From: Takakia lepidozioides
Lineage: Eukaryota; Plantae; Bryophyta
DNA: 64,000 nt
Assembly (NCBI GenBank): GCA_030704615.1
Contig: CM060733.1
Location: forward strand, 19,158,001-19,222,000
Reading direction: 5' to 3'
Shown here: positions 19,013 through 63,700 of the stretch, piece after piece
Position numbering within the stretch: the stretch's first letter is position 1
Layout: the number at the start of each line of letters is the position of its first letter
Notes under the pieces: model-generated
Seen by the model: only the letters and a program-made list of their open reading frames with translations
What the model was told of the DNA's origin: nothing
Database searches by the model: none
Translations under genes and position numbers: made by a program

Positions 19013-22000
19013 ATGGCAGGAATGTGTGGAGTGTGTGGAAGCAGCGAGATGAGTTCCGGTGATGACGGGTTTTTCTACTGTACGCGATGTGGGTCACAGT
19101 CACAAAACTATTTGGAAGAAGCTTTTGATCGAGATGATGCGCACATGTTCAGCATGAGGCTCATCCGCGAGAAGAGGGTGGGTAGGAATGAGCAGCGGGC
19201 TGCCTTGGGGTCGCAGCCTGGGGGAGTCGATGGGGAACCGGGGTTGATGGGCTCTCAACCAGCCTCTCTCCCAGGTACACAGGACGGTGGGAATTTCTTC
19301 CAAGAATCTCAGTTTGGCTCACAATTCGCAGCGGAGATTGGGGGATTCACGCAGTTTGGATCGCAAACCGGCGCTGCAATCGGCACAGGCACTGACTATG
19401 TAGGGTCCGGTGGTGCTTTAGGGTCACAGCATGGTGTATCAGTGGGCGCGCAGCTGGGGATGCAAGCTTCTCAGGGGGAGCTGTCGGATGGGGAAAGGCT
19501 TATGACGAATATACGGAGGGTGTATGTAGAAGGGATGCAGAGACTGCTGCAAATGCAATGCGAGGTTTTAGTGCAGAGATTTGGGGTCAGTCCTCTGATT
19601 TGTGCCTTTGCGGGACCCATTTGGGTGAAGTTCGTGGCAAGCACTTGCGTGTTCGAGAAAGGATGGGCAGACGAGGCATTGGTCGTGGCCGAGGCTCGGG
19701 CACAGCAAGACAGGAGAAAATCTCAGCAAGCCTCTCAAGGTCTCTCTCTCTCTCTCTCTCTCTCCCTTAAGCAAATGACTTCGAGTCCAGTACAGTTTAG
19801 GAGTCACAAACTCCTACATTATCGCTTTGGGATAGGTCTGATCCTGCTCAATTGACCTTGGTGAATCACGGCTTATACCCTGCTTAAACCCTGCAACAAT
19901 TTTTATCAAGATCTTGCCCTTAAATTCAACCCCTTTAGCACAATATTCTGGAGATAACTGTTGGAATTTTGTGGTGCGCAGGGTTGCAAGGAGCAGAGAT
20001 ACAGGATAATGAAGATGACAAATCAAAAACCCCTGTGAAATTTTTAAAGAGGAAGCGGAGGAAGCGGGACCTTGTAGAACCTTGGACTTCATATGGAGAG
20101 AAGGCACGCTATGTGTGGCTGCGGAACCTTAAGGGACGAATTCCAGCACGGGCCACACTCGCCATTTCTTATCTCGTGTGCTATCTTGCCCGGGAGTCTG
20201 TTCTGCCGACTGACATCATACAATGGGCAGTGGAAGGCACTCTGCCCTACCTAGCAGCAGACAAAGAGATAGTGAAACGCTGTGAGTTGGGGTCTATACC
20301 CCTTCCCATTAGTTCAAAGGTAATGTTTAAACCCACAAATATGACAAACGCACGCGTAGTGGAGCTCCTATCTGGAATAATTGCGGAACGGATATGTCTC
20401 CAGCTTCCCCCTGTGAACTTCCATGCAATTTCTCTAAGATTTTTGAAGGAGCTGAGACTTCCAGTTGAGAAACTAGCAGTACATATTTGCAGAATATTTG
20501 AATGGCACCCGCTTTCTGGGCTTTGGCTTTCTCCCAATCCCAATAACCTACCCACCCGTGTCTACGTTATGGCATTATTGGTGGTTGTGCTGAAGGTCTT
20601 CTATAAACTTGATGGCAGAGTCACTGAAAGGCAGAAATCCCAACTAAGAGGGCATTTGTCTCATAGGCCTGAGGGCACTGAAGGGCTCAAAGGTAAAGTT
20701 GATATTGAGAATGAGCAGCCAAACAAGGGGCCGCAGGAAGAGACAGAAAATATGTGGGACACAAAGGAGATGCTTACACAAATGCAAGAGTGTCTTCACA
20801 AGGATCACCAGTCTATTGGTGGGTTTTTCCAGTCTTTCTTTCTTTCTCAGATGAATTTCTGGGGGGTTGTGAAATACAGGGAATGCGTAAATTACGGAGC
20901 AGAAGTGCTCTAATTCCTGTGATCGTTCAGAACCAACTAAGTGTACTGTGGCTCATTTTTTCTGTTTGATCCCCTCTCCCCGGCCGGCCCCACCCCATCC
21001 GCTTGATGCATAGTCTGGTAACCGGTTTTTGGTGAACCTTACAGTTAATATGGGTGTTGGGCTGGCATACACAACCAACAGGAGCTAGGATCAGTAGTCT
21101 ATTGGTGGGCTTTCCCAGTCTTTTCTTGCTAAGATGAATTTCAGGGGATTGTGGAATACAGGGAATGTGTAAAATTATTGAACAGATTCGCTCTAATTCC
21201 TGATGGTCTTTCGGGACCAACTAAATATGCTGTGGTTTATTTCTGTTCGATCCCTCTCCCGGTCCTGCCCCCACCCCATCTGCCTCCTCTCTTACTCCAA
21301 GAGCATAATCTGGTAACCATACTGTTGGTTCTTGGTGAAGCTTACATTTTGTATGGGTGTTGGGCTAGCACAGACAACCAGCAGGAGCTAGCAAATTATT
21401 TGAAGTACTGCCGAGAGGTTATTTTCGCAGGCAACAACCTGTCGGCTGATGAGGAACATCTTCGTGACCATTTTTGGGAGCTCTATGAGAAGTTCTTAAA
21501 GCAGGTTCAATCTACATATTTTTCCATTGAGCATCATCGTTGTGTCTGTGACTCAGTTCACTGGAGTTATATAGGGTGGTGGCTTCCTAAACAACTCTTC
21601 ATGTGGCTGAGTCCTATCTATTTATCAGCATGGATAGATGTTTTGTAATTTAACAAGAAATGTCTCTCTGTGCTGAACTTTTGAGTGGTTATTGTGGTCT
21701 GAGCCCTATCTAACCAAATTTGGTCATCAGCTGGTATGAGCCAGCTGATGGAATTGGGCTGACTGACCTACCATGGGGGGTTGAAACCCCCATGACAAGC
21801 TCTGGGGGTGTTTGATAGGCGCTGTACCCTCAAGTGTACATCAGAGCCAGAGCAGTCACGGGCTCTGACAATATCTATCCCTCCTCTCTCTCTCTCTTTG
21901 TGAAATTATCACACTGCAGATTGATGCTTGTGTGAAGGGTTTTCTAGAGGATATCTGGAAAACCCGGATTAATTCTTTATATGGAGGTAAGTCTTACTAC

Positions 22001-25000
22001 CAACGTCAGCCCCTGACAGAGGTAGGTTCTGTCCCTTTTGTTCCCGCTCAAACTGGGCACGGGGTCAATGGCCACAAGGCTACGGCAAACAACGTCTTAT
22101 GAGTACAATCTCTTTGTGAAATTATCAACAAGGGTTTGAGGTACGAGCATAGTATCTGGCTAAGGCTGAAACTGAAGGGCGGCATGAGTACGAAGGACCT
22201 CTTTGTGGGTTGTGTTTACATGCCCACAGAGGGGACCCTTAGTGCTGACGCAGACAAAGCCTTCGAAGATGTAAAGCTAGACTGTGCTTCTTCCTTGCCA
22301 AAGGTCAGGTGATTTTATTGGGTGACTTCAATGCCCGGGTGGGTAAAGGTCTCCATCAGGATGATATCATTGGGCCTTTTGGTGAGGACGAGTTGAAGTC
22401 TAATGGCAGACGGTTAATGAACTGTCTGGAAGAGCCTCAGCTTCTAGCCTTGAACAATAGGGCAAAAGGTGACCAAGTGCAGTGGACTCGTGAGAAAGCC
22501 CAAACTGGGGAACGTTCCATTGTGGATTATATCATAATGGACAAAAATTTGTTTCCCCAGACTGCCAATGTGTTGATCGACAGAACTGATATTGGTACCT
22601 CTGACCACTTTCTGGTTTGGACTGAGATCAAAAGGTGTTTTCCCAACACCAAGAGATCTGGGAAACGTTCGATTCGGAAGTGGCGCATAGAAAAATTCCA
22701 TAATGAAGAGGTCAAGGCTGAGTATGTCCAGGCCTTGCAAGAGGCTCTCCCCATTTTGTCCACTCGCTCCAAGACCTTCAGTCTCGCACTGACAATGCAA
22801 GAAATGAAGTCGAAAGAGCAGTGGATGCTTGGGAGAGTTTCGTCTCCTCTGCGGCTGACAAGATCATTGGGAGGAAACTAATTGTCTGCGGTAGAGCTGT
22901 TAATTGGTGGACCAATGAGATTAAACTCAAGATAGCTGAGAGACAAGTCCTTTATAAACAGTGCTGCAATTTGAAAACCAACAAAGAATTGTGGGCGAGG
23001 TACTACCAGATCCGTAAAGATATCAATCAGCTTGTAAGGGCTCAGAAGAAATTATACTGGGACAAGTTATACAGTGAAATAAACTCAAACCACCATGGTG
23101 GTAATGAAGAGATTCTGGTTGGCCCTTCAACGTTTGTACAAGCCGAAAACCTGTCAGCAAGTACAAGCGCTGAAGACTACTAAGGGTGCAGTGGTAACTT
23201 CATCGGTTGACATTGTCAAAACCTTTGAAACCCACTACAGTATCCTTGGCAGAACTTCTAGGTCTAACAGTGAGGGGTCCTCTGATGAATGGAAGGACAC
23301 AGTTGGTTAAACTGTTCCTATGATTCAAAACAGCCGTGATGAACTGGAGTATATTTCAAAAGCCTACAACGCTCCCATTAGTTCTTCTGAGATTGTGGAA
23401 GCAATTGAACATCTAAATGGATATAAGCAGGTGGTCCTGATGGCATAATCAACGAGCTTATCAAGCACGGGGGCGATCCCATGATAGAGGCCCTAGTTCT
23501 CCTCTTTTATCTGGAAGACTGAAATGATCCCCTTTCGCTGGCGACAGGGGGTCATTGTCAATCTATATAAGAAGGGTGACAGAGAAGACCCGGGGAACTA
23601 TCGTGGCATCACGCTTCTCAATGCTGTTGCAACATATTTTGCAGAGTTATAAGTACCCGTCTCGAGGTTGATCTGGAATCTAGAGGTTGTTTTCACGAAG
23701 GCCAAGCTGGCTTTCGGCGAAACAGGGGCTGTGTGGACATATCTTCACTCTAAGCCAGATTATCCAGGGAAGGAAAAAAGAAGGGGAACCCACTTATGTT
23801 TTTTTCTTGGATGTCAAAAAGGCTTATGACACAGTGTGGAGAGATGGTCTATGGCTCCGACTCTGGTCTTGCGGAATCAAGGGAAAAATGTGGAGAGTTG
23901 TCCATAACTTGTATGCTCACACCAAAAGCTGTGTCACTGTTAATGGACAGAAGTCTAACTTCTTTGACATAGACCAAGGTGTAGCTCAAGGATGTACCCT
24001 CTCCCCTCTGCTCTTCAATGTTTTCATCAATCAAACTCCTCGAGGATGTGGAACGTGAGGGATTTGGGTTAAGCGTGGGTGATGCCACCATTCCAGCCCT
24101 TATGTTTGCGGATGACTTCGCAGGCATAGGGGAGACTCCTTTCAACCTCCAGGAATTGATTGATTGCGCGAAGAGATACTTTGATCTTTGGGGGCTAGAG
24201 GCTAATGTCAGTAAATGTGCAGTGGTGGCATTCAACGACAGAGGAGAGGGAGGAAGTGATCTTAAGTGGCAGTGGGGTAGCCAAGAGATTCCAGTCCTCT
24301 CTTCCTACACATACCTGGGCGTTGAGTTTTCCTCCAACTGTAACTGGGATGCACATATCCAGAAAGTTGTTCAAACTGGCAAGGGCAAAGCGCTGAGTCT
24401 CACTAAATTTTTCCACTGGAGAGGGATTAACTCTGAGGTCAAGAAAACCTTGCTTTGCCGCGTTATTAGACCTGCCTTGGAGTACGGATCTGCTATATGG
24501 GTTGACAACTCCAACCAGGCTAAGGCTCTAGAATCCATTCAAGTGGGGGTGCTTAAGGAGTGCATGTCAGCATGCTCCAAAACAGCCAATGTGGCTGTTC
24601 GGGGTGAGTTTGGCATCCCTTCCTTAAGCTCCCGACGAGATGAATTCAAGGTCAGATGGTGGGGTCAGTTGCAACACATGTCCAACACCAGATACCCTAA
24701 GTTAATCGACTCTATATCTTGGAAACAGGACTGCCCTGTCAAACAGGCCAAGTCCTGGCAGAAGAGAGTAGAAGAGCTTCTCAAGGATCTGAATCTGGAC
24801 CCGTAAGTCTTGACCTTGCTGGATAAATCTGACTTAGAGACTGTAGTGTCCAAAGCCATGTCTGTTACCAGAAAATTGTCTGATGCAAATGAAGTTAGGC
24901 AGAAAACTTCCCTGAACCTGTTTCCAGTCTGTGACATGGGGGAGGATATCATGGATGACCTCAAGGGTCTACCCACTCTCGGCACCAGACTGAAATTTAA

Positions 25001-26138
25001 TCTCAGGGCAGGAAGCCTACGTTTGAACAGTAAACAGAAGCAGAGAGGAAAGGGAGAGTGCAATTGCCCGTTGTGTGGGCAGCCCGAAGACAATATTCAT
25101 TTTCTGATTCACTGTCCGGGGTACTCTCACCAGAGAGAAGCTCTCCTCCAATCTATCAAGAGAATTGTGCCTGTACCTCCGTTTACCAACTTTGAAAGTC
25201 TCGAGGCTGAGCCAAAAGTCCAGGCCCTTCTGAGGCCTAGTTTTTGGGCAAATCACACACAGCAGATTGATGCTTGTGTGAAGGGATTTCTAGAGGATAT
25301 CTGGAAAACCCGAATCAATTCTATGTATAAAGGTAAGTCTTACTACCAATGTCAGCCCCTGACAGATGTAGGTTCTGTCCCTTTGGTTTCCGCTCAAACT
25401 GGGCGCGGGGTCGATGGCCACAAGGCTACGGCAAACAACATCTTATGAGTACATTCTCTTTAGCATGTGCAGGATGCTCCAAGCAAGTTGGGCAATGTGA
25501 AGAAAGAAGAGATGGGAGGTGCTGTGGCCATGGAAGTGGACAGAGGAGAATCAGAGGAAAATTCAAGCAGGATATTGAGAGGGCATTCTCCATCAGCCAA
25601 TACAGAGAACAATCTACGGAATATTTCTTTCTCACCAAGAGCTGTGGAAGACAACAGTGAACTTGGTTATCACAGCATAGGAAGGAAGCAGCAAAAAGGC
25701 AGTTCCAATCCTAGCAAACGGCAAGAGGGAGATGGGCCCCATAAGGGGGAAGTGGGTAACACACAGGTGGAAACTGAGGCAGAAAGATGTGCAAAGGCAG
25801 AGGGACTACAGAAGGGAAAAGGACTGAAAATACTTATTCAGGACATGGAGGACCTGGGATTCCGTCTTCTGGAACCGCTGAGAAAATTGGCCCCTGATGA
25901 GTATATGAGGTACTGTTGGCGCAGAAAGGACACCAAAAGATCTGTGCATGCAGACTACTTTGTGGTACTACGAGCATGTGCAAGTATTATAGATGTCGAC
26001 CCTAATGCACTCCATTCTGGTGTTCAAATTGTGGAAAAAGGCCTAATACAAATTGAGAAGCAGATTGAGGGCTGTATGGGCTCATGGGATGCTGAAGCTC
26101 CACATGAGGGGGATGGGGGAGAAGAAGGAATGGAATAG
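19013..26138 (+). CDS. TAF1B: RNA polymerase I TBP-associated factor B (TAF1B/RRN7, MEE12-like)
   Basis: Exons 19013-19739, 19982-20818, 21374-21504 and 25473-26138 join in phase. N-terminal zinc ribbon [20 protein letters not shown]; motifs [61 protein letters not shown] and [12 protein letters not shown]. Confidence 0.9.
20801..21391 (+). repeat. Diverged tandem duplication (about 290 bp x2) of TAF1B intron 2 with its flanking exon ends
   Basis: Units 20801-21086 and 21087-21391 are colinear, from AGGATCA..AGTCTATTG|GTGGG to GGGTGTTGGGCT.GCA..ACAACCA.CAGGAGCTAG. Confidence 0.9.
21912..22108 (+). mobile_element. 197-bp 3' fragment of LINE family B with 19-bp TSD
   Basis: Closely matches 25258-25454. 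Flanked by exact TCTCTTTGTGAAATTATCA at 21893-21911 and 22109-22127. Confidence 0.92.
22116..25454 (+). mobile_element. LINE family B, about 3.3 kb, 5'-truncated and inactivated (APE endonuclease, RT, CCHC)
   Basis: APE motifs [34 protein letters not shown] motifs [47 protein letters not shown]-terminal [17 protein letters not shown]. Broken by frameshifts and stops (e.g. TAA at 23308 and 24804). Stop codon at 25446-25448, end GAGTACAT, TSD about TCTCTTT. Located in TAF1B intron 3. Confidence 0.95.
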
Positions 26139-28142: not shown

Positions 28143-31100
28143 CTAGTCCACCGGAACCTCCACCTCCATCTTCAAGCCAGCCTTTCCAAGAACCTACGCA
28201 AAGATAGCACCAAACGCATACCAGATCAAGGATAAAATATATATATATATACACAAACATAGGTTCAGTGCCAGTGAAGCAGGCAATTCAACTAGTGTGC
28301 TTAATTGACCATGGAATCTATGCTCACTGCTGCTAATCAGACCTGAGAGATAACATGAATATACGAAATGGATTACATTGACACATACAGTGGGGGTGAG
28401 TTTCTATAACCAGTGAGCTTAATGCAAATACAAAGATCAGATTGTGAGGGTTGAAATCACAACACAGGCAGTTTTTTAATAATTCCGCCACAGCTGAACA
28501 ATCGCTCTTACATAAAACTGAGTGAAACCCATCTTAATTTAGGAGTGCAACACGTAAGGTGGTAGGCAGTCTATGGAACATGATTAAAAAAGCACACATA
28601 CACCACCCTCCCATCTTTCAGGCTTCCTTGAGCATACTGGGGCCTCCCTGGGAGCCAGACAGTCTATCCCCAAATCCTTGAAACCTCCAGTGCTTGTGTT
28701 GTGCCTCCCCTGCCTGGGTTATATGAATACATGTTGTATAAGAGGGAAAGACATTTTGCCCAAAGATTGAACCTTACTTTGAGTTTTCAGGTCATTAACA
28801 GGGCCAACATCTTCAGCACAGAGGCACTTGGAAGAATTCAGGCACCATGAAAGCTCCTTAGTAGAAAAAAGGTAAGCTGACCTTTGTGAAATCTTGGGGT
28901 GTTAGCACTGAGTCATATGTGTAACCTGCTTCTTCCAGTGCCCGCTTCACCACCAGCTGCATGCCCCAACGTGTCCATTTATTCTTCTGGTTGACAATCA
29001 GTAGAAGGTGGTATATTTGGAATAAATGTGGGGAGAGAAAGGAAGACAGAAACTTTGTAAGTCTGAGGGCCAAAAGAGACAGAAATCTATGAGATCTACC
29101 GGAGGCCAGTGGGACAGTTGGGAACAATGGCGAAGAACTACAGAAACCAGAGAACAATTAAAACCCTAAGCATTACAGAGACAGAGATTGCACTAGTAAG
29201 ATGTTGTTTGCCGTAGCCTTGTGGCCACAGACCCGACACTCAGTTTGGGCAGAATGATTGCAGAGACAGAGAGAGCACTTGCCTCCAAAGTATGGTAATG
29301 CAGACCCTATAAGCTGTTGGATGTGGCTGCAATGCCGCACTAAACCCAAGAGTACAAATTCAAGAAAACATGTCATCACCAAGGGCTCCCAAGTAACAGA
29401 CCTGACGTTGCTCTTCCGTTAAGAAAGACCCTGACAGATCGCGTAAAACTTGCAATATGTCACTAGCAGTCACCTTGCCATTGCCATCTGTATCATATAC
29501 TCTGAAGATGACTGCCCAAACATCCCACTTATGTCAGAGGTTGCTGCAGATAACGAGGGAATGAGAGCAAAAGCAAGGATAGAGAAGGGGTAGAAGAGGA
29601 AAAACATGAGTTCCCATAAAAGTATGATAGTTCAAGGCCGCCATGAGCATGAACTTTATGCATTGCCCTTGTAAGTGAAGCCTAGGACTACAAGTGCAAG
29701 CCTGCCAGTACAACTGGATCTCTTACTATACTTCTGGGCTGGTCCAAATTGTGACACAAGTGCAGAGGAGGTGAGGAAAGGGAGGCAGAGGCAAAAATGA
29801 TGCTGGACTAAGACAGATTCATAAATGGAGGACTTACAATGCACTTTGTCATGAAGTGTGGCCCGTGCACTGAAGGCTGAAAGGACAGCCACAAACTCCT
29901 TGAAGTTCAAGAATTCCAACATCTTGAGGAGTCTCTGCAAGAAACATGCAACATCTACAGCCCCTACGTCAACTCCCGCTTCATCTCATTAGTCCAATTG
30001 CCTCAGAACTGCAAGGAAATTAATTTCAAACCCAACTATCTTAAAATTCAAATAGCTGGTTAGATCAAGGCCCATGGAAACTGGCACTAGCATTGGTAAA
30101 GTTCCGCAGTCTTCCCTGCAGCAGCACAGGGTGGAAGGAATGTGCTAGACAAGCAGTGGTAAGACGACACAAGTTCACAAGGTGTCATGGCTTCACATCT
30201 CCCATGGCATTCTTTAGCTGGGCTTAACCTGGCTCCTCCTCTCCGGTGACCAAAAATGCATTCTGAGCCTGGCAACACGGCTTATTTATGCTAACAGCTG
30301 GCGTCATCTCTTTTGTTGGTCACTCAACCAGGATAACCTTGTTTTTGCTTGGCATATCTAGTTCTGGAACTGAAGCTTTCCCCATGAATAGGGGGATTAT
30401 TTTCCATAACTGCATCCAACAATTACAAGGGTTTGCACACGTGATTGAAGTCACAGTTGGGGGAGGCAAATTGAATAGTTTAACTATTGAGAATAGGCTG
30501 TGTAAGGTGGTTAGTGACTACACCAGATTTGCTGTAGTCACTAACATCAGTAAAGTGCCAGGGGAGGTCATCTCCAGAGCAGCTCACCCTGATTCTCCAC
30601 ATGATAATTGCGTATGGGTAACCAACTTGTACTGGGTGTGAGAGGACACCACCCATGGGAGCCGTATGTCTACAGCATATCAAACATATTTAATCAAGAG
30701 ATTGTCATCCCTTGTGGGTTTGCCATGACTTCACTTGTGCAATGATGGGTTTATATCCACAACTGGATCCAGAAGGGTCACATTATGCAAGGAGTATTTT
30801 CACCATTGCTAACCATCCCAGGGAGAACCACCACTGAGCGGTCTCTTCCTTGTCCTTGATCTACGCCCCCTCCCCAACCTACGAAACCAACTCCTAGGAG
30901 ATAAGCCTAATAAGTAAAAAGGAACTCATGAGATGTTGTCCATACCTGAGAGAGTGGGTTCACTGCAAATTCCGGAACTCCCATAAACTCATCAGCAGAG
31001 ATGAAACCTTTTCCATTGCGATCGAGTGCACAAAACCTCTCGTACAATGCAATTATCTCCCGTTGTGAAACTGCGCAGAGAACGCACAAAGCATCCTTGA

Positions 31101-31586
31101 GCAGATCAACAAGCTGACAACCTAACACAGTAAAAGCCAATTCAAGTCTATTTTCTAAGGGGCCGTTTGCCCCACCCCTTCACACACGTCGACAGAAAAA
31201 AATAAAAATCGGACACACTCCTATTCCTATTACAGAGGGAGAAGATATCAGGCATCTCTCTAAGACCCAACACACGCACACGGGCTTATATCTCAGACAA
31301 AGCACATGCGCCTCCCAACCTTCACCACTCCTCTCCAGCTCTCCTCTTCAACGAAATCGAAGAAAGAAACTCTCAAGAGAAGTGCACATGGAGAGACAGA
31401 GCCTGAGGGAAAATCCAAACAAACTTTTCCACAGACACCTTAAATTATCCTACACAGCGGAACTTTCTTCACAGGTCTTGCAAGGAAATCATCACACGAA
31501 TCCACAAGCAACTCACAGCTATGCTTGGTGTGATTCTGCAAGTCTTCCAAGTCGTATTGCGTGAGCATTGACGAGTAATTCCCCAT
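28143..31586 (-). CDS. Calcineurin subunit B-like EF-hand calcium-binding protein
   Basis: Exons 31586-31517, 31070-30946, 29934-29838, 29511-29402, 28956-28882 and 28193-28143 give MGNYSSMLTQYDLEDLQ..LYERFCALDRNGKGFISADEF..FRVYDTDGNGKVT..KMEVEVPVD*. It has an N-myristoylation-type MGxxxS start and canonical EF-hand loops, and resembles the Arabidopsis At3g18430 type as recalled. Confidence 0.92.
29188..29256 (-). mobile_element. About 70-bp 3' fragment of LINE family B with 16-bp TSD
   Basis: Reverse strand reads ..GTGGCCACAAGGCTACGGCAAACAACATCTTACTAGTGCAA. TSD TCTCTGTCTCTG(C/T)AAT at 29257-29272 and 29172-29187, one mismatch. Confidence 0.88.
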
Positions 31587-31690
31587 ACCTGCCCTCCCCT
31601 GCTCTCCCTCCACATCCCCTGCCTGTACCCACGCCCACGCCCCCGCCCACAGTTCACCGACGGACGAAGTTTCTTTTTCCGTCCACATAC

Positions 31691-32110
31691 TTTTCTTTTT
31701 CTTTTTTTTCCTTTTGTTTTTTACATGAAAGGGGACAGCTGCCCTGTTACTCAAATTCAAAAGAAGCGAGGAAAAAATAACGATACAATCTGGGGAAAAC
31801 CCCCCCCCCCCACTGAGGGGAAAATTTCGAACTCGCGACTAACTAAGCACACAAACAAGGCTAGCAAAACCGGAAATAAGAAGGAAGAGAGGCCGTAATG
31901 GCCCTCCACATGGAAGACAAGCTAAAAAGGAGAAGACTCCGGCCAAAGCCGGCGTAACTAAGAGCCACTTCGCCTTGCCACTACTGCCCCTTTCGAGGGG
32001 TGGGCTGAGGCTCAAAACTCAGATGGCTTTGATCTTGGAATTGCGGTTCCTCTTATGTTTCCAATTAACATCGTCTTCCTCCTCCAAAGGACTCCCTCCT
32101 CCACATACTC
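31691..32110 (-). mobile_element. Possible 3' remnant of a poly(A)-tailed (L1-like) retroelement
   Basis: T-rich tract at 31691-31722 followed by GAAAGGGGACAGCTGCCCT, similar in layout to the element at 55183. No recognisable ORF or TSD. Confidence 0.3.
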
Positions 32111-32154
32111 AACATGATTTACACAATATGCTCAAGGATAGTATGTAAGATTCT

Positions 32155-32259
32155 GACACGTGCGCATCCCATATTGGTTCTCACATTGGCTGTAGAGACA
32201 AGTGATGACACGTGTCTTGTCCATTGCATGCATAATGTAGCCTCCGGGGTCTATAAGTA
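32155..32259. promoter_or_regulatory. Two G-box/ABRE elements, an RY element and a TATA-like motif
   Basis: GACACGTG at 32155-32162, palindromic GACACGTGTC at 32207-32216, TGCATGCA at 32225-32232, CTATAAGTA at 32251-32259. Function not shown. Confidence 0.4.
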
Positions 32260-32336: not shown

Positions 32337-32504
32337 TTCACTTGTGAGTTTACTGTTTGTGTGTGTGAAATCTTTGAATTCACTTGTGAGTTTACTCTAT
32401 GTGTGTGTGAAATCTTTGAATTCACTTGTGAGTTTACTCTTTGTGTGTGTGAAATCTTTGAATTCACTTGTGAGTTTACTCTTTGTGTGTGTGAAATCTT
32501 TGAA
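32337..32504 (+). repeat. Minisatellite, 4 x 42 bp
   Basis: Unit TTCACTTGTGAGTTTACTCTTTGTGTGTGTGAAATCTTTGAA; the first two units have one substitution each. Confidence 0.97.
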
Positions 32505-36439: not shown

Positions 36440-37182
36440 AGAGTGGGGCAACAGGCAACTGCATCCTATCGGTCAACCATTTTTCCTTAAGTAGGTTTCT
36501 ATCAAGATTGTATCAAGCAGTCCAGTTTTGATGGCAGATGGTCATCGTCTTCTACTGGAGCAAACACACATGGGCATGTTTGTATATATCAGATTTTTTG
36601 TTCTCGGTACAACCTTTCTGCAGGTATCTCATGGAGTACTTGTAGAGACCCAAACCACAAGGGCTGGGCTTCCTTGCCCAAGTGCAGAAGAGATGGGTTG
36701 GGAATATTAGCACAGAATCCCTGTGTTATGTGTCCTCTGGACTATGGCAGTAACAGGAAGCTTAGTAAGTACTGCTGCATTTTTTTGGGCTCCTCCCTGT
36801 AGGGAAACCATGCCTTGGTGCCAAAATCCTGAGACTGTGCCTCCCTTCCTTAGTACAATTCTACATGTTAAGGCTTTCTTCGGGTTTTTTTTTTGTCACA
36901 AGAATGCAGTGACTTTGTGCACCCAACCTGCTATTTAATGCAATGATTGTAAATATTTTTTTACAACATCAAAAGTTTGAGAGCAGAGGAGATGGTGTTG
37001 CATTTTTGGGTCCTGGGTTGCATTGTGGTTTGAATTGCATGTGGAAGAATCGAGAGTAGAGAGATGTGTGTGTTTGTAGGAGAGGGTGACGAGTGAGGCC
37101 TGAGTACATCATGTGGAGCAAGCTTTGTGGTTTTGGAGCATGGGTCAAGTAGGAGAAGTGTGAGATTTTGGAGGTGAGAAGC

Positions 37183-38016
37183 ATGAAGAGCTCAATCTCA
37201 AGGTACTGGGTTCGCGTCCTTGCCCAGCGGCAGACTACCTCGTGCGCTCTGCGGAGCACTCATCACATAGGCAGCTGGGCTTGTCGTGGAACATTCTCCA
37301 GAAGTCTCAATATATTCACAGTTTTCAGTAAGGAAGCCCGCGATAAGGAGCAAGCAAGGCTTAAAGATGAGCTGAATCGCGGCTACTTTGATGATTTGAG
37401 GGATCTGAAGAAAACTGGTGGGAAGGTAGCAATTGCAAGCCTTCATCTGGTACCCATTGCAGCTGCCCCCAAATTCCCATCTCTTGTTGTGCAATCGCCA
37501 CTTGGAGATACCCTAACTCTGCCAATCGAGGAGGATGTTATCGTCTCCAGTAGGGAGGGAGATAAGTCACAACCACTTTCAAGTGTGGCGCCGACTATTG
37601 TCTGCATAGCATTCCGGGCGAGCGCACAATCGATGGTCGAGTCATGGAGCATACCTTTTTCCAAAGCCTTCCAGTCGGCCAGTTCTGTCCAACTATTCGA
37701 GGTTTCTGTTATTGAACCGTGGGTGCTTTCTCTTCCGCCAATCAAGAGTTGGCTGCTTCGATCCATGCGAATATCACATCCTCCTGCGGAAGGAGATGAA
37801 GTGCTGAACCGACGGGCAGTATACGCTTTCGGAGACACTTATTTCTTCAGGAAGACTCTTGGTATACCGAATCTGATGTCTGGGTATGTATTTTTGCTTG
37901 ATAGAAAGGGAAGAGTGCGGTGGAGAGCAAGCGGAATGGCTACTACAGAAGAGTTGGGATCGATGGTGTCCTGCACATCGCGGCTCCTTGAGGAAGAAGC
38001 ACCAAATAGGTCTTGA
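37183..38016 (+). CDS. ATP10: Mitochondrial ATP synthase assembly factor ATP10, single exon
   Basis: Motifs RLKDELNRGYFDDLRDLKKTGGK, FRASAQSMVESWSIPF, YAFGDTYFFRKTLGIPNLMSGYVFLLDRKGRVRWRASGMATTEE. Arg/Ser-rich presequence from the ATG at 37183. Confidence 0.9.
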   Translation: MKSSISRYWVRVLAQRQTTSCALRSTHHIGSWACRGTFSRSLNIFTVFSKEARDKEQARLKDELNRGYFDDLRDLKKTGGKVAIASLHLVPIAAAPKFPSLVVQSPLGDTLTLPIEEDVIVSSREGDKSQPLSSVAPTIVCIAFRASAQSMVESWSIPFSKAFQSASSVQLFEVSVIEPWVLSLPPIKSWLLRSMRISHPPAEGDEVLNRRAVYAFGDTYFFRKTLGIPNLMSGYVFLLDRKGRVRWRASGMATTEELGSMVSCTSRLLEEEAPNRS

Positions 38017-38751: not shown

Positions 38752-38804
38752 ATCTGTGAACCCTACAGACAAGTATCTGTGAACCCTACAGACAAGTATC
38801 TGTG
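38752..38804 (+). repeat. Tandem repeat, 2.3 x 23 bp
   Basis: ATCTGTGAACCCTACAGACAAGT twice, plus a partial third unit. Confidence 0.95.
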
Positions 38805-47905: not shown

Positions 47906-50900
47906 CTAGGCTACAATCTCAGATCCACCCGCTTCAAGTTCCTTTAAGATTGCGATTTCTGCCCTTTGCGTCAAAATCTTGTTGTTATGGATCTACTCTT
48001 GAACAAAATTGTTGGAGGGAGCATGTGTAGCCAGCATCTTAGCCTGTGCCCACATGATTTCATTTCTTGCATTGCCACAACTTGTGCATTGAATTTCTGT
48101 ATTGGAATGTAATCCTGAACTTTTGAGTCATTAGACCAGCACTGCAATGAGATGGAGAAAAAGAGGGAAGAATGTGCCTGCTCATGGCATTGCTCTTTCA
48201 ACTCGTGGTAAGAAGCTACAAGCCTGTTGCAACGCACGTGGTGGTCTAACTGCAGCGGCCCTCCTGGTTTTGGATGTGGTGGTCCCATGGCCTTTCCCAT
48301 GACGCAGACATGCAGAGTTTGTCAGAGCAGGAAGGGAAGTGGGCTAGCTTCCCATTGATTGCAGTGCATGCCTTCAATGGATTGGAGATCCCAAAGTGAA
48401 ACACTTCAAGGGATGGATGCCATCCTAGTGGTGATAGTGACTAATGAATCTTACCAATGTTAATGGAAGAAGCCCCTAGAATACCCATTTGGCAATGCAA
48501 CTCCACCTGCTACTAGTTGGACCGTGCAGCATAGCCTCCAACATTGGCTAAGGGGCTAAGCCTAGGAGTTTGTCATCAACCACTATTTTTGAATGCAAAT
48601 CAACTTTAATGTGGCCAATTCCCTCACAAGTGGGCTACATGTTCTGAGGACATGCATCTGCTGTATGTTTAATCACCTAACAATGTGCATAGCAAAAATC
48701 ACAAATATGCCTACAAACAAGAGCAAGGATCCTAGTGAGAGACATGAAAACAGAGGCCTTTCTTTCCATACCTGTCGGGCAGCTGCAAGTTCTATAGTTA
48801 GAGCTTGGATCAGGAGATCGTCATTTGTGCTTTTTCCCAAAAGTAGTCCCATCTTCTGCCTTGCCCCCCTTATCTGTCACATTTCCAGAGAAACTATGTG
48901 GAAACTAGTGAGAACTTGATGCCAGTCTTACATAGACCCTGTAGGATAGATGTATCAGCTGTTTGCAAGTCATGGTAATGGCATTATAAATGTCATTATC
49001 AATATTCAGAAAGGAATTATCAGCAAGTAGATCTTTTCCTTTTGTGTTTGGCTACTGGCAAGCGAGAGCTGGCAGTATAGTAGTCTAGTATAGTGACCCT
49101 TCTACAGACTTGTCTCCAATAATAGGGTGCCTACCAAGTCCGTTAGTTCCTGTGAAGCGAAGAAGCCATCAGAGTCACAATAACTGTTCATGATGGTTTC
49201 TCATTGACCATGGAAGTAGTTTTGTTGTTGATTCTTGGCAATGTGCCCTTCTCACAGAGATTGACTAACAACCGAGACTGAGGTCCCACTGCCACACACT
49301 CAAGTTAGAGAGGGCACATCCTAAAAGAATAAGAAATAATAATGATCCAACTTGGAAGTGTTGGATACCTCTTTCTCCACGTTATTCTTACGTGCAATCA
49401 CAGCATCAAGCCTTTGCTTTTGCATCCCCCACGAAGTTCTCAAAGCCTGCATCATCATCAGAAATTTGAACAAGACCTGTTATGTTATTCACCTCAATGT
49501 CATCAAACCAACTTCTCATGGGGGGAGAACCAGCCTGGACACTGATAGTCACTGGCGGTCCCCATGACCATATGCACAGTTGAATAATGGCAGGCCACAA
49601 AACTGAAAGGTGAATGATGATCTGCCTATGAGCCTAATCCAAGGGGAGAGGAATGTTGTATTCCTGTCTTCAAATGTTGCTGCTTTCCAATGGATTGAAG
49701 GCCCCACAGAGCAATTTGATAGATTTAAACAATTTCCATTTTGAGCTCTACTGGAGGTAGCTTGCATCACAGCCAGCACTGCAATCTACTGCATATGAAT
49801 TGATCATGCTCGTACCCTTTCCAAAGTTATGGCAGTGTAGTAAACCTAGAAAACTATCTTCGCTAAATGTACCAAAAGTACCATGACTCACCAGAAAATC
49901 ATGGACCATTTTGTCATATTGTAGCCGTCGGTCCTTGTCCATTGCTTCAAGCTGGTTTCTATGAAGAATCTCAACAGTCCGATGCTCATCATTGAAAACT
50001 GTGTTGTAGCCAGGGTCAGAGGGTTGCAGCTCCTCGACTTGCACCTTCAACTCTGCAACCTTGTCCTGGAAGCATATGTATCCCATTTCAGGGGCTATGG
50101 CACTACCAAAAAGTATTAGATCATGAAAGAATGACTGGGTCAGTGGTCTCTGGCTGTGTAAGAATCATGTGTTCTGGCAATGAAGACTACACCAGTGCTC
50201 AAGTATCTCTATCCTACTCAGTGAGCCATGAATTGGTTTGTTGTTAAACGTACACCGAGATTCAGGGGTCAGCAGCATAGCAGGCATTTTTAACAACCAG
50301 TCAAGCAGGAAAGGGAATTCCATTACCCTGAGAAGAGATACTTGCTCACTACGCCCCACCCAGCCACTGCCTTCCTCCAAAACCTGGTGTCACATTCCAG
50401 TCCTTGATTTATAGGTCAAACCTGACTGCTGATCATTCTACTGTGAAGGTCTTGGCCTCTCCCCACACAACACTGAAATGAAATGAAATGGTGCTTTATA
50501 ACATCCGCGTGAATAAGCTCGCCTACCATGTGTGCATAAACCTGATCTTTTCTAACCCCTGCGATTTTTAGCAATTTAAAAACATTGAAACTGTTGTGAC
50601 CATGAAGTTGAGTAACCTCTATTGCAAGGAAGAGGGAAGACAGTCCGTTCAAGTCCCACCCTTATCCCTTTTGCATATAATTATCTAGTCATGATGGTTT
50701 ACTCAACATGTTCCAAAAGAACTGGAAGTGTTAAAAGACAATGCACATGGTAACACTATCATGAGATCCAGCAAAAGGAGGAACTACTGAGATGAATTAC
50801 TTGACAATCAGATAGTGCAAGAGATCATGCAGATAGACTCCAATCAGACCAGAAACTTGTGCAACCAAGCACTGAATGAGAGAACCTTCTGAAGAGGAAT

Positions 50901-56077: not shown

Positions 56078-57145
56078 AATATTGTAGACAGTAAAACAGA
56101 GAGACAACCTCTCTCGATTTAGAGTATTTAAATCGTATCTAAATTCGTACTTTATAATACCTTCTTCCCTCCTATAATACACTACTGAAGGTTATGTGCT
56201 CTTCATCATCTGTAAGGTTCACAGATTTCTCTTCTACCAGAAAGTTACTCTTTGCTGTATTATTTTGAAAGCCAAGCAGGCGGCTTCAACCTGAATTCAG
56301 TAGAGCAGAGACTCTTCAACATTGTGGACTGGACTGCATCTACTACCAGCAACCAACTCATGCAAGCTGCTCAATGTGTATCAGAAAGAAAAAGTAGCAG
56401 ACATTAGGCATGGGACTTGCAAGGTTTTTAGTTTTGCTCAAGTGGTGAATGCATGCGGCAAAAACCCTTTTACAGCAAACAGTCAGGTAGAAACTAGAAA
56501 CACTGAATCAAGTGTCCGTAATTCAACTCAAAAGAATATATCAAAGGAACACTACCCTGATCATTATGGCTGGGAATTATGCTTTGCATCAAGAGCAATG
56601 AAGACAAAAATACTGTTAAGAGTTGCATTGGATGGCAAGACCCCAGAGCTCTTGGGCTCTGGATAATGATCGATAATAAAATGGCCTTATGAGGAAGCAA
56701 GCACACTGCTAGCTTAGTCTCTACAGGTCACAATGCTACTCTCTCTTGCTCTGTTTCTCTCCTTCTCTCTCCAATGTACATATCAATCTCAGCAACTCGG
56801 GCAGAAATTTTGCCCGATTGACCCAGCAACCCTTCTTCTCATGTCCTCCCAAGCACCTGGCCAGCTAAAATCAACACATCAGCATCTTCCACTCTGAGAT
56901 CGAAACTTGAGGGTCAGATGCCAGACTCAACACAGGCAGAGAATTGCAACCATGTGAGCAACATGCAGAAATGGAGACAACACAAATTGTTTCTCCTGCC
57001 GTGTATAAGAGACTATAGGTTGATACTACTGTCTTCAGAGGCTACTCATCTTTGTCAAAGGATTCAGTCATGGGCTGAAATGCTTAGCTTCATGAGGCCA
57101 TCCCTTTGAGCAGCCATTCAGGGCTACTCTATTTTGGTTTTCAGC

Positions 57146-57590
57146 CCACTCTTGGCACTAGACTGAAATTTAAACTCAGGGCGGGAAGCCTGCCTTTGAA
57201 CAGCAAACAGAAGCAGAGAGGAAAGGGAGAGTGCAATTGCCCGTTGTGTGGGCAACCTGAAGACAATATTCATTTTCTGATTCATTGTCCGGGGTTCTCT
57301 CACCAGAGAGACGCTCTCTTCAAATCTATCAAGGGAATTGTGCCTGTACCTCTGTTTACCAACTTTGAAAGTCTCGAGGCTGAGCCAAAAGCCCAGGCAC
57401 TTTTGGGGCCTAGTTATTGGGCAAACCACACACAGCAGGTTGATGCTTGTGTAAAGGTAAGTCCAAGGTAAGTCTTACTACCAGCGTCAGCCCCTGACAA
57501 AGGTAAGTTGCTGTCCCTTTGTGTTCCGCTCAAACTGGACGCGGGGTTAATGGCCACAAGGCTACGGCAAACAACGTCTTATGAGTACAT
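57146..57590 (+). mobile_element. 445-bp 3' fragment of LINE family B with 18-bp TSD
   Basis: Closely matches about 24973-25454 with one internal deletion ([23 protein letters not shown]). Ends GAGTACAT. TSD TCTATTTTGGTTT(T/G)CAGC at 57128-57145 and 57591-57608. Confidence 0.93.
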
Positions 57591-57762
57591 TCTATTTTGG
57601 TTTGCAGCTGTTTCTTTGTTTACTCTGCATTCTTGTCCCACATGCTCTTCGACCTTCCTGTGGATGTCATTATTTCTCAAATTCTCTGATTCTCTCTCCC
57701 ACTCCGGGTAGACACTTACATCTGTGAAATAGATGTTGGGTCTCAGCAACTCTACCTGCGTT

Positions 57763-60700
57763 TTAAGCATTGTCTTCCACGTGATGGTTCACCTCGTTCT
57801 GACTATCCAAGGGCATGTACTGCGCCATGATGGCCCTTATCTCTGAATCCATATACGACTGCCAACACCCACCATTCATCGAAGGTTATTTAAGTCAGTG
57901 CCATGCAAGCAAACCATCAATTTGCACTAGAATAGTTCGTCTCTCAAAACCAGTTTTGCCAGATTACCAGTCGTGTTTGGTATCATATCCCAGCATGGAA
58001 ATGTACTGCACTTTCGTGGATTGTGTCGCATACAATCTTGATGTTTTGAATTCAACAAAACATCAACCAGAGGCCTAACTGAAAAAGGCCAGGTCATTCA
58101 GCATTACAATCCAGCAATGATCTCAAGTACACGTACCCGGAGTCTGTACTTATAGACAATGTAGCCACCTACTCCAACCACCGCCATGCCAGCGAGCACA
58201 AGGAGTGAAACCACCCATCCAACCCTTGTCTGTGAAGTTTTCTTGCCTGCAAAAACGGGGAGAGTAACAAAGATCTCCAACAGCTTCAAAAAGATGGCAA
58301 AAATTTGAAGCATCTATAGTAAAGCTTAATGTGCCAACAAGTCTCACTTTTAGCAGGAAAACTTTGCAGTGCACCAGCATAGAAGAACTATTTCATACCA
58401 AGGCAACAGGAAGGGGTGAAGTTGTGACTTACTGATGCATGTATCATGTTCTCTGAAATAGAGAAGGTCGCCTGAGCATCCGCATTCATAACCACCCCAT
58501 GTGTCTTTGCAATTGCATTCGGAACACTGACACTTGGTCTTCTCTTTGCATTCGTTGATATCTAGATCAAGTTAGAATCCAATTGTATGTCACTCATATA
58601 GATGACATCCCAAGGACATTGCGTCTCAAAGACCAGTTTGATAAACAGAATCACATGCAGAACCCATCAGGACCTGTGAAACACTCATGTTCCTCTTTGT
58701 TACTGGTGCAAATTGTAAAGAATGCCACCAACCATACCTGTTACATTCAAGTCTTGTTTATGGAGTTTCAATGAAGGCATGTAAGGCACTATGCCACAGT
58801 AAAGCCCAGGTGGTATTCTCACATGACATATTTGTCTTTCTATAGTTACCAGGAAGTGCCAACTCTTTTGATTGCAATGCGAGAGAGATGGAACAGAGGG
58901 AGAAACTGACAATGACAAACTAAAACCAACAGCACAAGCCATTTAATTAAGGACGTAGAGTCTACCAACACACTCGTTGATGCCATCCCCTATGAAGCCT
59001 TCTGGGCAATGGCACCCTTTGAGCTGTGTATCCTGCATCCATAGTTGGACAAACTCACCTCAACTTGCCTGTGAATCATTTACCAATAAATGTAATGAAG
59101 ATACAGCTGCTCCCTGGCTATTATCATCATAAATGAATATGCCATAGAAACATCAAGTGTTACCGAGCAAGCAGAGAAAGTAAGGTCGCCACGAGTATCG
59201 TGCCAGCAACCACCATTGTTAATTTTGCACCGTTCCGACCCCGTGGCTGTTTTGCAAACACGCAGTGTAATTAGAACACGCTCCTACAGCTGGAATCGAC
59301 TTTCGGCACCAGGAAAGATCCTCTAGATTTCGATTAGACACCTTCAGTGGGAAATGCTGCAAGAGCCCTCCTCCCTCCATTCCTACTCTTTTCTGGGATA
59401 TGAATGCAAACTGAGGACATAGGGACAACCAAATGAAATCAACAGTTTCAATGACGGTTGTCAGTACGTATGCATTTACAATCAGCTTACAGCAATGCAA
59501 GACTCAAAAATGTGAGCAGATCTGAAGTGGCAACAAGGAATATTACGATCAACAACGAGACAGAGAAAATCACCTTCACAGGAACTATAACCATCACCAG
59601 TGAGCTGAACCCCTTCAACCATGGGACACTGGCAGACACGGCCCCGAAAGGTATCCTGTGCATGAGAGCATCACATAGCTTTAGGCTGCGGAGACAGGCA
59701 GCAGTGCTGGTAGCCTTTCAAGTTATTAGAAAAAATCCTCTAATAACACCTGAACTGTATGGGGGTCAACAACTCCTCGACACATGGGGCCATGGCAGAA
59801 CAGACACAGGCCACTTTCCAGCCTCAAACCATCACCTTCATTAACCACCACCAATGACAATCATTTCATGGAACGAGCCACAAGTTATGGCCCTAACACT
59901 TTAGAAACATGTTTGATATAAACCAAGATATACAATGTTCAACTGTGTGAGATAGAAACTTACCTTGCAAGCAGAAACATTGGCTTTCTTGTCTTCCCAG
60001 CAGCCTCCATTGTTTGTCATACATTCATTAGACTCCACTCCTGCAAATGCAGGCAACCATCATGTGAAATCAAAGGTATCAGCCTGCCCAGCTGTATGCT
60101 GATGTGGTCAAATTCACTATGGTTCTAAAAACAAACTTTCAACAACCTTTCCCACATCAACTCATCCCACACCTTCTGTATCTGTGGAGCTACCAACTTT
60201 GAAGACCACATCTGGGGGGGGTGCAGCTTTCTCCAACATTCCAAAAATACCCATTTCAAGATATTGAATTAGGGTTCTACCAGTGTCTAATACGTATGTG
60301 TGTTCTTCCTCAGTTCAACATTGCTGAGAAGAGAAACACCTGCAACTCAGAATGAATGGTGGTCCCTGAGATTTTCCTGGTTTACACAGACTTCTCTGGA
60401 GCAAATTCCTCTTTTCCTCCATTCCAGTAGTGTGACTTACCTTGATATAAACACATAGTACGGGCTTTCCAGGTATCCCCTTCACAGAAGCATCAATCGA
60501 ACAGAGGTGCAGGAACCATGTTCTTGATGTTCCTGAAGAGGGTTACTCTCAGGTGAGACATTGTACCAGAAAATGGATATTGTCTTCTGGTTGCCCACAC
60601 ATCAGGCACTTACAATTTCCTTTTCCTCTCTGCATCTGTTGATTGCTCAAGGGTAGGCTCCCTGCCCTGAGTTTAAATTTCAGTATAGTGCCGAGGATAG

Positions 60701-63700
60701 GTAGGCCCTTCAGATCATCCTTAAGGTCCTTGCCCATGGCACAGACTGGAAACAAGACCAGGGAGATAAGTCCCAAAGTAGAAGCTGCTGCAGGAAGTTG
60801 TCAGACACGGTGGCGTCCAACAAATGGCGTAGTACTTAGGGCACAAGGCCGCCTTATATATGTTGAATGTCACCCGTTATAGCCAACCCAACTATAAAAA
60901 GGGGTCGTTGGGTCAACTGATCATTTAATGTGTGGCTTCCTTGAGTCTTGGGGAGGTTTGGGCAATCGCATTGCCCAGTTACGGCCGTTAGAAGGTTCCA
61001 AAAACGGAAGGCAGTAGCCCTGTGACACCATACTTTACGCTTGATTCGACAGGAGTCAACCCCCTCATGGACATCTAAGTTGTACATTCTGTTAATGTTG
61101 CACAATAGGATTGATAGTACTACTTGCACCTGTTGGCACCCAGTCAGAAGCTGAATGGAATGGACTCCATCCAGACGACAACAAAGTCTCGCAGATAATA
61201 CTCCCACCTCAGTTTCCAATGTGTGAATGTTTGGAAAGTGATGCCATACCATCACTCAGACAAACTGGTGGATCTGTGGTCTCCTTATATCCTGAACAGA
61301 TGGCCTTCAGTACAGCTCCCTTGTCTAGCTTCCCTGCAAGAAGGAAATGATACAGTATAATTGTGGGATGATATCTGATATACATTACTCTACATCGGTT
61401 TGGAATAAGCAAGAGGCCTATGTCCTACACAAGACTCGTATGTGCAACTCCCAAGGCCAAGCCAATGTTTGTGAATGTGCTTGTTCAATGTGTAATGCTG
61501 TCAAAATTCGTAATGGAGTGACCACGGTTAGGTTTCCAAATTAGTCTCAATTAGTCTTAAGTTCATGTAGTCTTAACAACGTCCCTGAGGGCAGCAGTCA
61601 TATGCAGGGTTCATAAAAAGAAAGAGTAAATTCCGGCCAGATCAGTGCAACACAAGTGAGCTTTCAAGTAAGCTCCCACATATATGGGGATTAAAAATCC
61701 ACTAATACGTGAAGTCCTAGCCGCCACTCTATAGCTGTCTTCTGATTTTGTTCTCAGCTAATTTCGTACACTGGATTTATGAACCAGATTAGATCATTGA
61801 ATCTTTACAGGAAACCCAACACTCACAAAGGCCCCGGCCACAAACCTCGGTACTGCCTGTTGTTGATAATGAGGGTGGGCAGAATGGTGATATCACCGCG
61901 TGAACCTGATCCCACCTGCCAGACTCAAATTCACCATGAGCAGAGGAAGGGCAGCTGCTTGGGACTGTTGTAAACCTCAGTATTCCCCTCTCTTGTCAGG
62001 GCTAATTCTTGTGATTAGCAGCAGAACTAATTTTGTAAGCTAAGACTTGAAGCAGTGCCCGCAAGCCCAAAGAAGTTAAGCAACACCCTGCATGAAATGT
62101 CTCTGACCGTAAGGATGCCTGTACTCTTTGAGTCCAGTGTTTGCTGCTGCCATATGACAACAGTCCCATGGTGCACTAATGGCTGAGATGACCTTGCAGC
62201 AACTTCCATTCCTGACAGAAGTCTATGTTGGGGTACCCTTGCCAAGTTCCCAAAGTCCTTAATGTGGATTCAGAAGAAGAAAACTGGCAAGTGTCACTGA
62301 GTGCATTCTTGATCCATTAAGGCTACTATGTCCTTCAGGAGAAGGTGGTTTGAAACAGCCATCTTATAGTTTTTTTTAAGTCTTCCACCAAGAACTCAAA
62401 GCCTCCAATGTCGAGGAGGCTCCACCTGCCACTACATTTACCAAATGCTTCCAACGCAGGCCGGAAGTGGATTTGAACCCAACATGACCTTTGGGGGCAA
62501 AGTGCCAACCACTGCTGTCTGCTGGAAGATTCAAAACATAACAGAGCGACAGCATAGGTCTGAAGAGAACCAGGCTCAAAATACTTTATATGCTTACTTC
62601 ATATCCAATCAGATAGGTCAGAGGGGAAAATAACTCGTCTACTATACATTCCCATGCTGCCAAAGCATTGAACAGAAATATTTACAATTCCTGATTACCA
62701 CCCATGAACGAATACAGATCATACCCACCTGAGCATCTTGCTCACTCTTCAAAAGAGGGTGATCCTCATCTGCTTCAGTATTTCGCATACAATCGCGAAC
62801 AGATTTGGCATCCAAAGCTGCAAGCACGTACACTTTTTTAATCTTCATAGTACTAAAAAGAAACCGTGTTAAACTTTGCCAGAATTACACCCTTCTGCAG
62901 ATTTATTAACTCTCTCTCTCTTTCTCTCCATGGCCACAAGGCTACGGCACACAACGTCTTATGAGTACATTCTCCATTCTACCCTTTGTGGGCACGGGGT
63001 CAATGGCCACAAGAAACAATGTCTTATGAGTACATTCTCTCCAACTGTTGACTTTGATTCCACAATAACATCTCTCTTCTGCTAAACATCAACCCTCTTT
63101 CAAGCAGGGAGGGAAGTTTACATAGAGACCGGAGAACTTCTTCTGCACACTCCTGGTTGTATTTCTTCTCCTTCATGGGACAACGGATTTGGAAATCGGT
63201 CACATAGTCCCACCATACCCAAGGTCGCTTGATGTCATTGGTAACCTTGAAAACACAAAGCTGCCTCAAATTCTCAATAACCACATCCTTCCCGTCATAG
63301 CCTGTGGTAAAATCCTGCTCTGGGTCAGGGGCACAGTACCGGCCATGATTGATGCACTGCGCTTTACACTGCTTACTAGTAATAAAGGCTTGGGGACAGA
63401 ACCAGGTGATGTAGTGGGGTGTGAAGAGTGTGTAACCCCCTTTCTCCAAAAGCTGGGCAGCGCCCTTGAAATTCTTCACAAAATCAATTTGTGCATCACA
63501 TTTGGACCCGCACTCATCGTTGCTATTGGTCCAAAACTCGTATTCTACACGGTCGTCCGGGTGAGGGAGTGCTTCCCGCCAGTCGAGGTTGATGTTCACC
63601 ATCTCCGACCCAGTTAATGCCTTCTTCAGATCATCGCCAAAGCCCTTCTCAATCAGCGCTGATGGAATTGTGATGTTCGGTAAAAAGTTTGCAAGGGGGT

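Follow-up and report, generated by a model that had tools for sequence, protein, structure and literature searches.

Copies of the family in the window

The window analyzed here, a 64,000-nucleotide (nt) stretch of the genome of the moss Takakia lepidozioides (GenBank assembly GCA_030704615.1, contig CM060733.1, positions 19,158,001 to 19,222,000), contains a family of long interspersed nuclear elements (LINEs), very likely of the RTE-X clade, whose copies stop at a fixed 3' end and are joined there, without a tail, to a TCT that belongs to the target DNA. All copies in the window are truncated at the 5' end, and the longest begins inside the APE endonuclease domain. The copies, their target site duplications (TSDs), and the parts of the longest copy, which covers open reading frame 2 (ORF2) with its reverse transcriptase (RT) region, are as follows, in window positions.

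21893-21911, + strand: left TSD of the short copy, 19 bp; starts in (TC)6, and its final 12 nt coincide with the start of the long copy
21912-22108, + strand: 5'-truncated 3' copy, 197 bp, inside the long copy's left TSD; 90% identity to the long copy's end
22109-22127, + strand: short copy's right TSD, of which 22109-22115 doubles as the long copy's left TSD
22116-25454, + strand: long copy, truncated at the 5' end; contains only ORF2, interrupted by several frameshifts and stop codons; APE (C-terminal part), RT, and a C-terminal CPLC..E..HF..C motif
22116-22680, + strand: APE endonuclease, C-terminal two thirds; PF14529, E 8.5e-6; GDFN, DY, and SDH catalytic motifs; aligned with full-length relatives
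23433-24803, + strand: RT and thumb region, frameshifted; RVT_1, E 4.6e-15; 49% identity over 456 amino acids (aa) to P0314
25410-25432, + strand: predicted conserved 3' RNA hairpin; 3-bp and 5-bp stems with a 4-nt loop, in the last ORF2 codons
25445-25454, + strand: terminal ATGAGTACAT; ORF2 stop TGA at 25446-25448, then a 6-nt 3' untranslated region (UTR)
25455-25461, + strand: right TSD of the long copy, TCTCTTT; directly 5' of a splice-acceptor-like AG
29188-29256, - strand: 69-bp 3' copy; 16-bp TSDs at 29257-29272 and 29172-29187, one mismatch
40996-41040, - strand: diverged 3' remnant; TCT next to it, no TSD
57146-57590, + strand: 445-bp 3' copy; 18-bp TSDs at 57128-57145 and 57591-57608, one mismatch; target C/TCTATTTT (the slash marks the nick), no TC tract
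60427-60764, - strand: older family fragment, 71 to 76% identity, 3' end missing
62932-62970, + strand: 39-bp 3' copy; 7-bp TSD at 62925-62931 and 62971-62977; lies within the next copy's left TSD
62978-63035, + strand: 58-bp 3' copy with internal deletions; 8-bp TSD at 62923-62930 and 63036-63043

Termini and target site duplications

The seven 3' ends named in an earlier sequence-only reading of this DNA were all relocated, five on the + strand (22108, 25454, 57590, 62970, and 63035) and two on the - strand (29188 and 40996). TCT follows directly after each of the seven, against a background of 0.022 per position. The single end consensus put forward in that reading, TTATGAGTACA, is exact in five copies and does not extend to those ending at 29188 and 40996, which have diverged. 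A scan with a 20-nt family motif, allowing at most three mismatches, recovered six of the seven ends where 0.01 was expected by chance, and the seventh was missed because of a deletion within the motif.

TSDs of 19, 7, 16, 18, 7, and 8 bp were confirmed for six copies, two of them with one mismatch, at the lengths previously read, and all six begin with TCT. The 19-bp TSD lies at 21893/22109, while the left copy of the long element's 7-bp TSD is now at 22109 and the right copy at 25455; 2 of these 7 nt may represent microhomology. The 16-bp (29257-29272/29172-29187) and 18-bp (57128/57591) TSDs are those with a mismatch, and the remaining two lie at 62925/62971 (7 bp) and 62923/63036 (8 bp). 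A match of 16 to 19 bp has a chance probability of about 0.0006, and an exact 7- to 8-bp match one of 0.002 to 0.004. No TSD was detectable for the remnant ending at 40996.

In the three long TSDs, TCT flanks the element on both sides. Because the left TSD copies carry it too, TCT is target DNA, as had been proposed from sequence, and the possibility that it is the element's own tail was rejected. At the boundary between element and right TSD, none of the six copies with a TSD has a single extra TC unit. The fixed 3' end, variable 5' truncation, TSDs of variable length, and 5' microhomology are hallmarks of the target-primed reverse transcription (TPRT) of a non-long-terminal-repeat retrotransposon. 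The earlier count of five TSDs preceded by C became, on recounting, C at -1 in four of five distinct nick positions (p ~0.03), a weak signal since the positions are not independent.

Junctions in public sequencing runs

Contigs of four public runs were aligned to positions 21800-25600, and the best-supported positions at which contigs leave the reference (loose ends) were tabulated, in counts of contigs rather than of copies. In run X1, DNA of the same organism, loose ends after TCT number 132 contigs at one reference copy and 101 at the other, and those after TCTCT 265 and 122, 620 in total. Among the loose ends listed, the smallest comprising 72 contigs, none falls at the three positions short of a full TCT, the stretch in which random flanks would put about 98%. 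The pattern recurs in runs X5 and X6. Random 3' flanks genome-wide, which the sequence-only reading had named as grounds for refutation, are excluded, and the element is highly repeated. In 233 of the 620 junction contigs the sequence diverges from the reference straight after TCT; the consensus of the loose ends beyond TCTCT is a long TC run.

Joints within contigs reveal copies arranged head to tail with short spacers rich in TC between them, an arrangement also present in the window, and a loose end before 22114 indicates that the element extends further 5' in other copies. Some contigs also contain tail-to-tail copies, with 3' ends on opposite strands (joints 22107/25459 and 22111/25457). 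In run X10, from a second species (organism B), the element is present at 90 to 99% identity over most of its length.

Nesting and target composition

The six TSDs collapse to four independent loci, as two copies are nested in the left TSDs of older ones: 62932-62970 lies within the left TSD of 62978-63035, and 21912-22108 within that of 22116-25454. In the latter pair, the 19-bp TSD belonging to the copy that ends at 22108 is made up of the 7-bp TSD of the long copy followed by 12 nt of APE-coding sequence from that copy's start. Since this TSD contains the start of the long copy, the long copy was already in place when the short one was inserted into its left TSD.

Of the four loci, two lie where a (TC)n tract ends on its 3' side, the one at 29272 is moderately rich in CT, and the one at 57128 is not CT-rich. 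The earlier statement that five of six TSDs lie in or near (TC)n or CT-rich tracts is therefore retained for three loci, only two of them (TC)n, and not for 57128. The window's three longest pure tracts, (TC)15 at 18959, (TC)12 at 19741, and (TC)8 at 40670, are unoccupied. Strict microsatellite targeting was rejected given the lack of a repeat at 57128, the empty longest pure TC tracts, and the 233 of 620 junction contigs that diverge after TCT. The required core is TCT plus pyrimidines rather than a microsatellite.

Coding capacity and probable placement in the RTE-X clade

The long copy contains a frameshifted ORF2 with APE (PF14529), then RVT_1, then a C-terminal Cys/His motif, the same order as in intact relatives, and the ORF2 stop lies 6 nt upstream of the element's end. 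Residues C87, C90, E94, H98, and C103 of the C-terminal region are invariant, and the region aligns to protein P0314 of the brown alga Ectocarpus with an E value of 1e-9. With 49% identity over 456 aa, the window RT is also related to P0314, which contains three motifs of the published RTEX-1_Ec32 protein. This identity makes membership of the RTE-X clade very likely, and the earlier description of an RTE/RTEX-like plant LINE is borne out. The APE-RT order and the Cys/His motif are as expected for the clade. All of the best matches are RTE-X-like, which argues against an L1/Tx1 placement in a comparison that included no Tx1 sequence. The APE piece matched no solved endonuclease in the PDB.

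For the trees, the ORF2 pieces were joined with X at each break rather than replaced by a consensus, and homology searches were run piecewise; the one with the C-terminal 213-aa piece, subject to a length filter, yielded no homolog. FastTree placed the window RT and P0314 in one clade (0.895, 0.923). IQ-TREE grouped the window sequence with P0319 and P0151 (99/98), with P0314 as the next nearest row and weak deep forks.

The nearest proteins are encoded on metagenomic contigs, and the nearest named ones are those of Ectocarpus. The moss RT is 56% identical to the metagenomic family (P0319/P0151, locus L012) and 49% identical to Ectocarpus proteins, both above any plant protein among the matches. 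A patchy distribution or horizontal transfer is possible on these identities.

A conserved hairpin and the repeats next to relatives' ends

A terminal VxG protein motif common to many relatives is a reading of a conserved nucleotide motif. We compared the DNA of five relatives with this motif (42 to 55% GC), each represented by one locus, giving six families including that of the moss. A hairpin of 3 + 5 pairs with a 4-nt loop is common to all six in the RNAalifold consensus. Of its cells, 93.8% are paired, as against 8 to 48% in slid controls, and two pairs have compensatory changes; its covariation score, from six sequences only, was reached by 11 of 500 shuffles. Folding z-scores of the hairpin in single sequences were not significant. 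The relatives end in ATGA or a close variant at the ORF stop, each stopping within 1 to 7 nt of it. In L012 the ATGA end lies past the ORF stop, so the terminus is conserved beyond coding. Matches from a scan with a degenerate 3' motif were discarded, three being non-LINE chance matches in metagenome contigs and two being phage genes in viral contigs.

The sequences adjoining these ends differ: (TC)26 in L002, (CT)20 in L006, (CA)5 in L007, (TTA)4 in L011, and TTATT in L012, the nearest relative of the moss family (99/98). No such repeat follows the stop in L003 and L004, which lack the motif. For L011, a brown-algal family, no further copy and no TSD was found. With TTATT in the nearest relative, the adjoining repeat appears to change fast, which fits priming by the RNA end; across these six loci, such turnover favors a large role for priming.

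The long repeats also bear on another explanation, in which this is an ordinary RTE-X element with a (TC)n tail of its own, a broadly cutting endonuclease, priming only by those ends that complement the tail, and real tail units on many genomic copies, those of the window being tailless by chance. RTE-X elements usually do end in simple repeats (PMC3747384), the loose-end consensus continues as a long TC run beyond TCTCT, 20 to 26 TC units follow L002 and L006, and a second RTE-X family in the window has a (CATTT)n tail overlapping its TSD. We nevertheless consider this explanation quite improbable, because the left TSD fully accounts for the right flank in six of six copies, and an extra TC unit would show at 57128 and 29272. 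The second family, which is unrelated and RTE-X-like, is represented by a 3' fragment at 1876-2757 (+ strand), an ordinary tailed counterpart with a candidate 9-bp TSD, TTTCCTTTT, at 1861 and 2749 overlapping the tail, and by a short further copy at 50474-50521 (- strand).

Host genes and other features of the window

Most copies of the TCT-associated family lie between exons of host genes. Three of them, the remnant within the proteasome gene and the pair within the vacuolar sorting receptor gene, are antisense to the host gene, so a strict sense orientation in introns was rejected. The genes concerned, and others in the window, are as follows.

28861-31838, - strand: EF-hand (calcineurin B-like) protein gene
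37168-38016, + strand: ATP10 gene
40510-42400, + strand: proteasome beta subunit gene
44678-46168, + strand: intronless 6PGD gene; protein closest to Sphagnum (89%), next 85 to 87%
58107-63917, - strand: vacuolar sorting receptor gene

When both copies are excised, the sequence left at 21860-25470 resembles a branch point followed by a pyrimidine tract of (TC)n and an AG, and a 224-codon open frame begins at 25464. Judged from this sequence, a 3' splice site that lay downstream of the TAF1B/Rrn7 ORFs was probably interrupted by the two insertions. The TSD copies at 57128-57145 and 57591-57608 each end in a T-rich run plus CAG, resembling a splice acceptor, and no + strand gene was identified at 57128-57608.

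Such contexts raise the question of whether insertion is broad and selection leaves copies mainly in intronic pyrimidine tracts, as the position of most copies between exons and the splice-site-like empty site of the long copy might suggest. Three exact nick bases in hundreds of junctions are beyond the reach of selection, and in the three antisense copies a pyrimidine tract on the element strand has no role in splicing; this account is disfavored as highly improbable. For the host, insertion at TCT(Y) places many copies in pyrimidine-rich intron sequence and builds tandem stacks.

Elsewhere in the window, a tandem duplication of about 290 bp (20801-21391, 76% identity) lies where the TAF1B/Rrn7 coding region ends, and long open frames with CFAP65/DLEC1 Ig-like domains at 4300-11226 (- strand) mark a cilia gene, a marker of motile sperm. 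Near-perfect tandem repeats occur at 32337-32504 (42 bp, four units), 38752-38804 (23 bp, 2.3 units), and 39301-39391 (45 bp, two units).

Proposed mechanism

We propose, with a probability of roughly 60%, that an RTE-X element inserts at TCT(Y) by TPRT through recognition of the hairpin, a nick at AGA/N, and priming on a read-through UCU. The fixed end, TSDs, TCT rule, nesting, and hairpin described above are observations; the steps that would connect them are proposed. The ORF2 protein would bind its own RNA through the hairpin and the ATGAG end, a stringent form of recognition. APE would then nick the bottom strand at 5'-AGA/N-3' with a loose preference for pyrimidine/purine tracts. The RNA would run past the element end GAGUACAU into UCU by read-through into the flanking TCT; as each genomic copy is followed by TCT, read-through transcripts would carry UCU. 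The freed AGA 3' end could pair with UCU(CU) at the RNA 3' end, RT would start on the element's last base, and with synthesis beginning there no tail would be copied. A top-strand cut 7 to 19 nt downstream would yield the TSD. Target and "tail" would then be one sequence, mutually renewed in every generation, and since the left TSD retains the whole target, repeated insertion could occur there.

Endonuclease bias and priming on a read-through UCU were the two mechanisms suggested in the sequence-only reading, and both are kept here as the candidates. Nicking and priming probably contribute jointly, as in L1, where primer-template pairing contributes to target choice besides the preference of the endonuclease (PMC3649969). 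That the endonuclease alone is specific for (TC)n/(GA)n, as is assumed for Kibi and Koshi, with the RNA stopping unpaired at the last base, seems to us unlikely. Both nested insertions lie in a left TSD, which retains the upstream TC tract, C is found at -1 in four of five sites, most junction contigs run on as TCTCT or longer, and TC adjoins two distant relatives as well (L002 and L006), all of which speak for an endonuclease acting alone. Against it stand the insertion at 57128, which has no TC tract, the three long pure tracts left empty, and the 233 of 620 junction contigs that leave the reference after a bare TCT. Moreover, with TTATT in the nearest relative and CA, TTA, or C in others, the adjoining sequence is more labile than a specificity encoded in protein would lead one to expect.

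Several points weigh against priming on read-through RNA in an RTE-X element. The trees were built from RTE-X-like sequences and held no L1, RTE, CR1, or R1 reference. The relatives are single loci without a left TSD, and their repeats may be tail rather than target. The loose-end table comprises the best rows only, and the listed joints include no empty allele or empty-site joint. The runs are contigs, none on record as RNA, and no RNA 3' end was observed. Finally, C at -1 in four of five nick sites is unexplained by priming and leans, weakly, to a role of the endonuclease.

A broader and distinctly tentative extension of the read-through scheme is that an RTE-X sub-lineage found in moss, brown algae, and metagenome eukaryotes is tailless, and that the repeat flanking the parent copy mainly sets the target through the read-through RNA; specificity would then pass on with the flanking DNA and could switch among C, TC, CA, and TTA with an unchanged endonuclease. 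Microsatellite targeting by APE-type elements is poorly understood and is usually ascribed to the endonuclease (PMC3812793). A plant family present in high copy number and bound to an exact three-base rule, together with close kin that have the same hairpin at other repeats, offers natural pairs for separating the role of the endonuclease from that of the RNA end.

Comparison with known systems

Stringent-type LINEs have a 3' repeat that overlaps the target. In L2/UnaL2, CR1, and plant RTE, which are of this type, a conserved 3' stem-loop adjoins the terminus (PMC3747384). Their stem-loop lies in the 3' UTR and tail repeats are kept, whereas in the moss family the hairpin lies over the last ORF2 codons, the UTR is 6 nt, and no tail is retained.

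Kibi and Koshi belong to L1/Tx1 and Waldo and Mino to R1, clades distinct from RTE-X. These APE-type elements of fish (Kibi and Koshi, Tx1 group) and insects (Waldo and Mino, R1 clade) insert at TC, TTC, or AC repeats (PMC3812793). As in the moss family, repeated insertion builds tandem copies; unlike the microsatellite-specific Kibi and Koshi, the moss family needs only TCT plus pyrimidines. By analogy of target, with the sequences of these elements standing outside our trees, the likeness is best read as convergent.

Within RTE-X, green algal elements end in (CA)n, (CAA)n, (CCAT)n, and similar repeats rather than poly(A) (PMC3747384 Table 3), and RTE-X is present in Marchantia centromeres (bioRxiv 10.1101/827881), where it is described by chromosomal position and not by target sequence. 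Compared by description rather than by sequence, these elements belong to the same clade as the moss family, and neither a TC repeat nor a TCT target is listed for them. The tailless end without poly(A) or simple repeat that the sequence-only reading had stressed stands for the window copies, and what loses its surprise is the absence of poly(A), which is normal for RTE-X and RTE (PMC3747384 Table 3).

The closest described parallels are RTEX-1_Ec32 and RTEX-2_Ec32 of Ectocarpus, for which a (C)n terminus and TSDs rich in C are entered (PMC12477816 Suppl. 3). They share with the moss family an EN-RT ORF, a C-terminal CxxC..E..H..C, a terminal VxG, the lack of poly(A), a 3' end at a simple repeat that matches the TSD and that in the moss copies with a TSD is target-derived, a non-autonomous partner in tandem, and thousands of copies (PMC12477816 Suppl. 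2 and 3). They appear in PMC12477816 in a supplementary table, and no discussion of targeting or of a 3' hairpin was found in the searchable passages of that paper. The moss family differs from these (C)n/C-rich elements, as entered there (PMC12477816), in its TCT(Y) core, the absence of extra tail units, and its land-plant host. The earlier view that the family was not recognizable as described holds for the TCT target, which was not found in the searchable literature, and no longer for a simple-repeat end that coincides with the start of the TSD, already on record for the Ectocarpus elements (PMC12477816 Suppl. 3). That literature, which does not cover Repbase and Dfam, contained no account of a land-plant LINE that targets TC. 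Relative to it, the TCT target in a land plant, the end without a retained tail, and a lineage-wide hairpin accompanied by switching repeats are apparently new.

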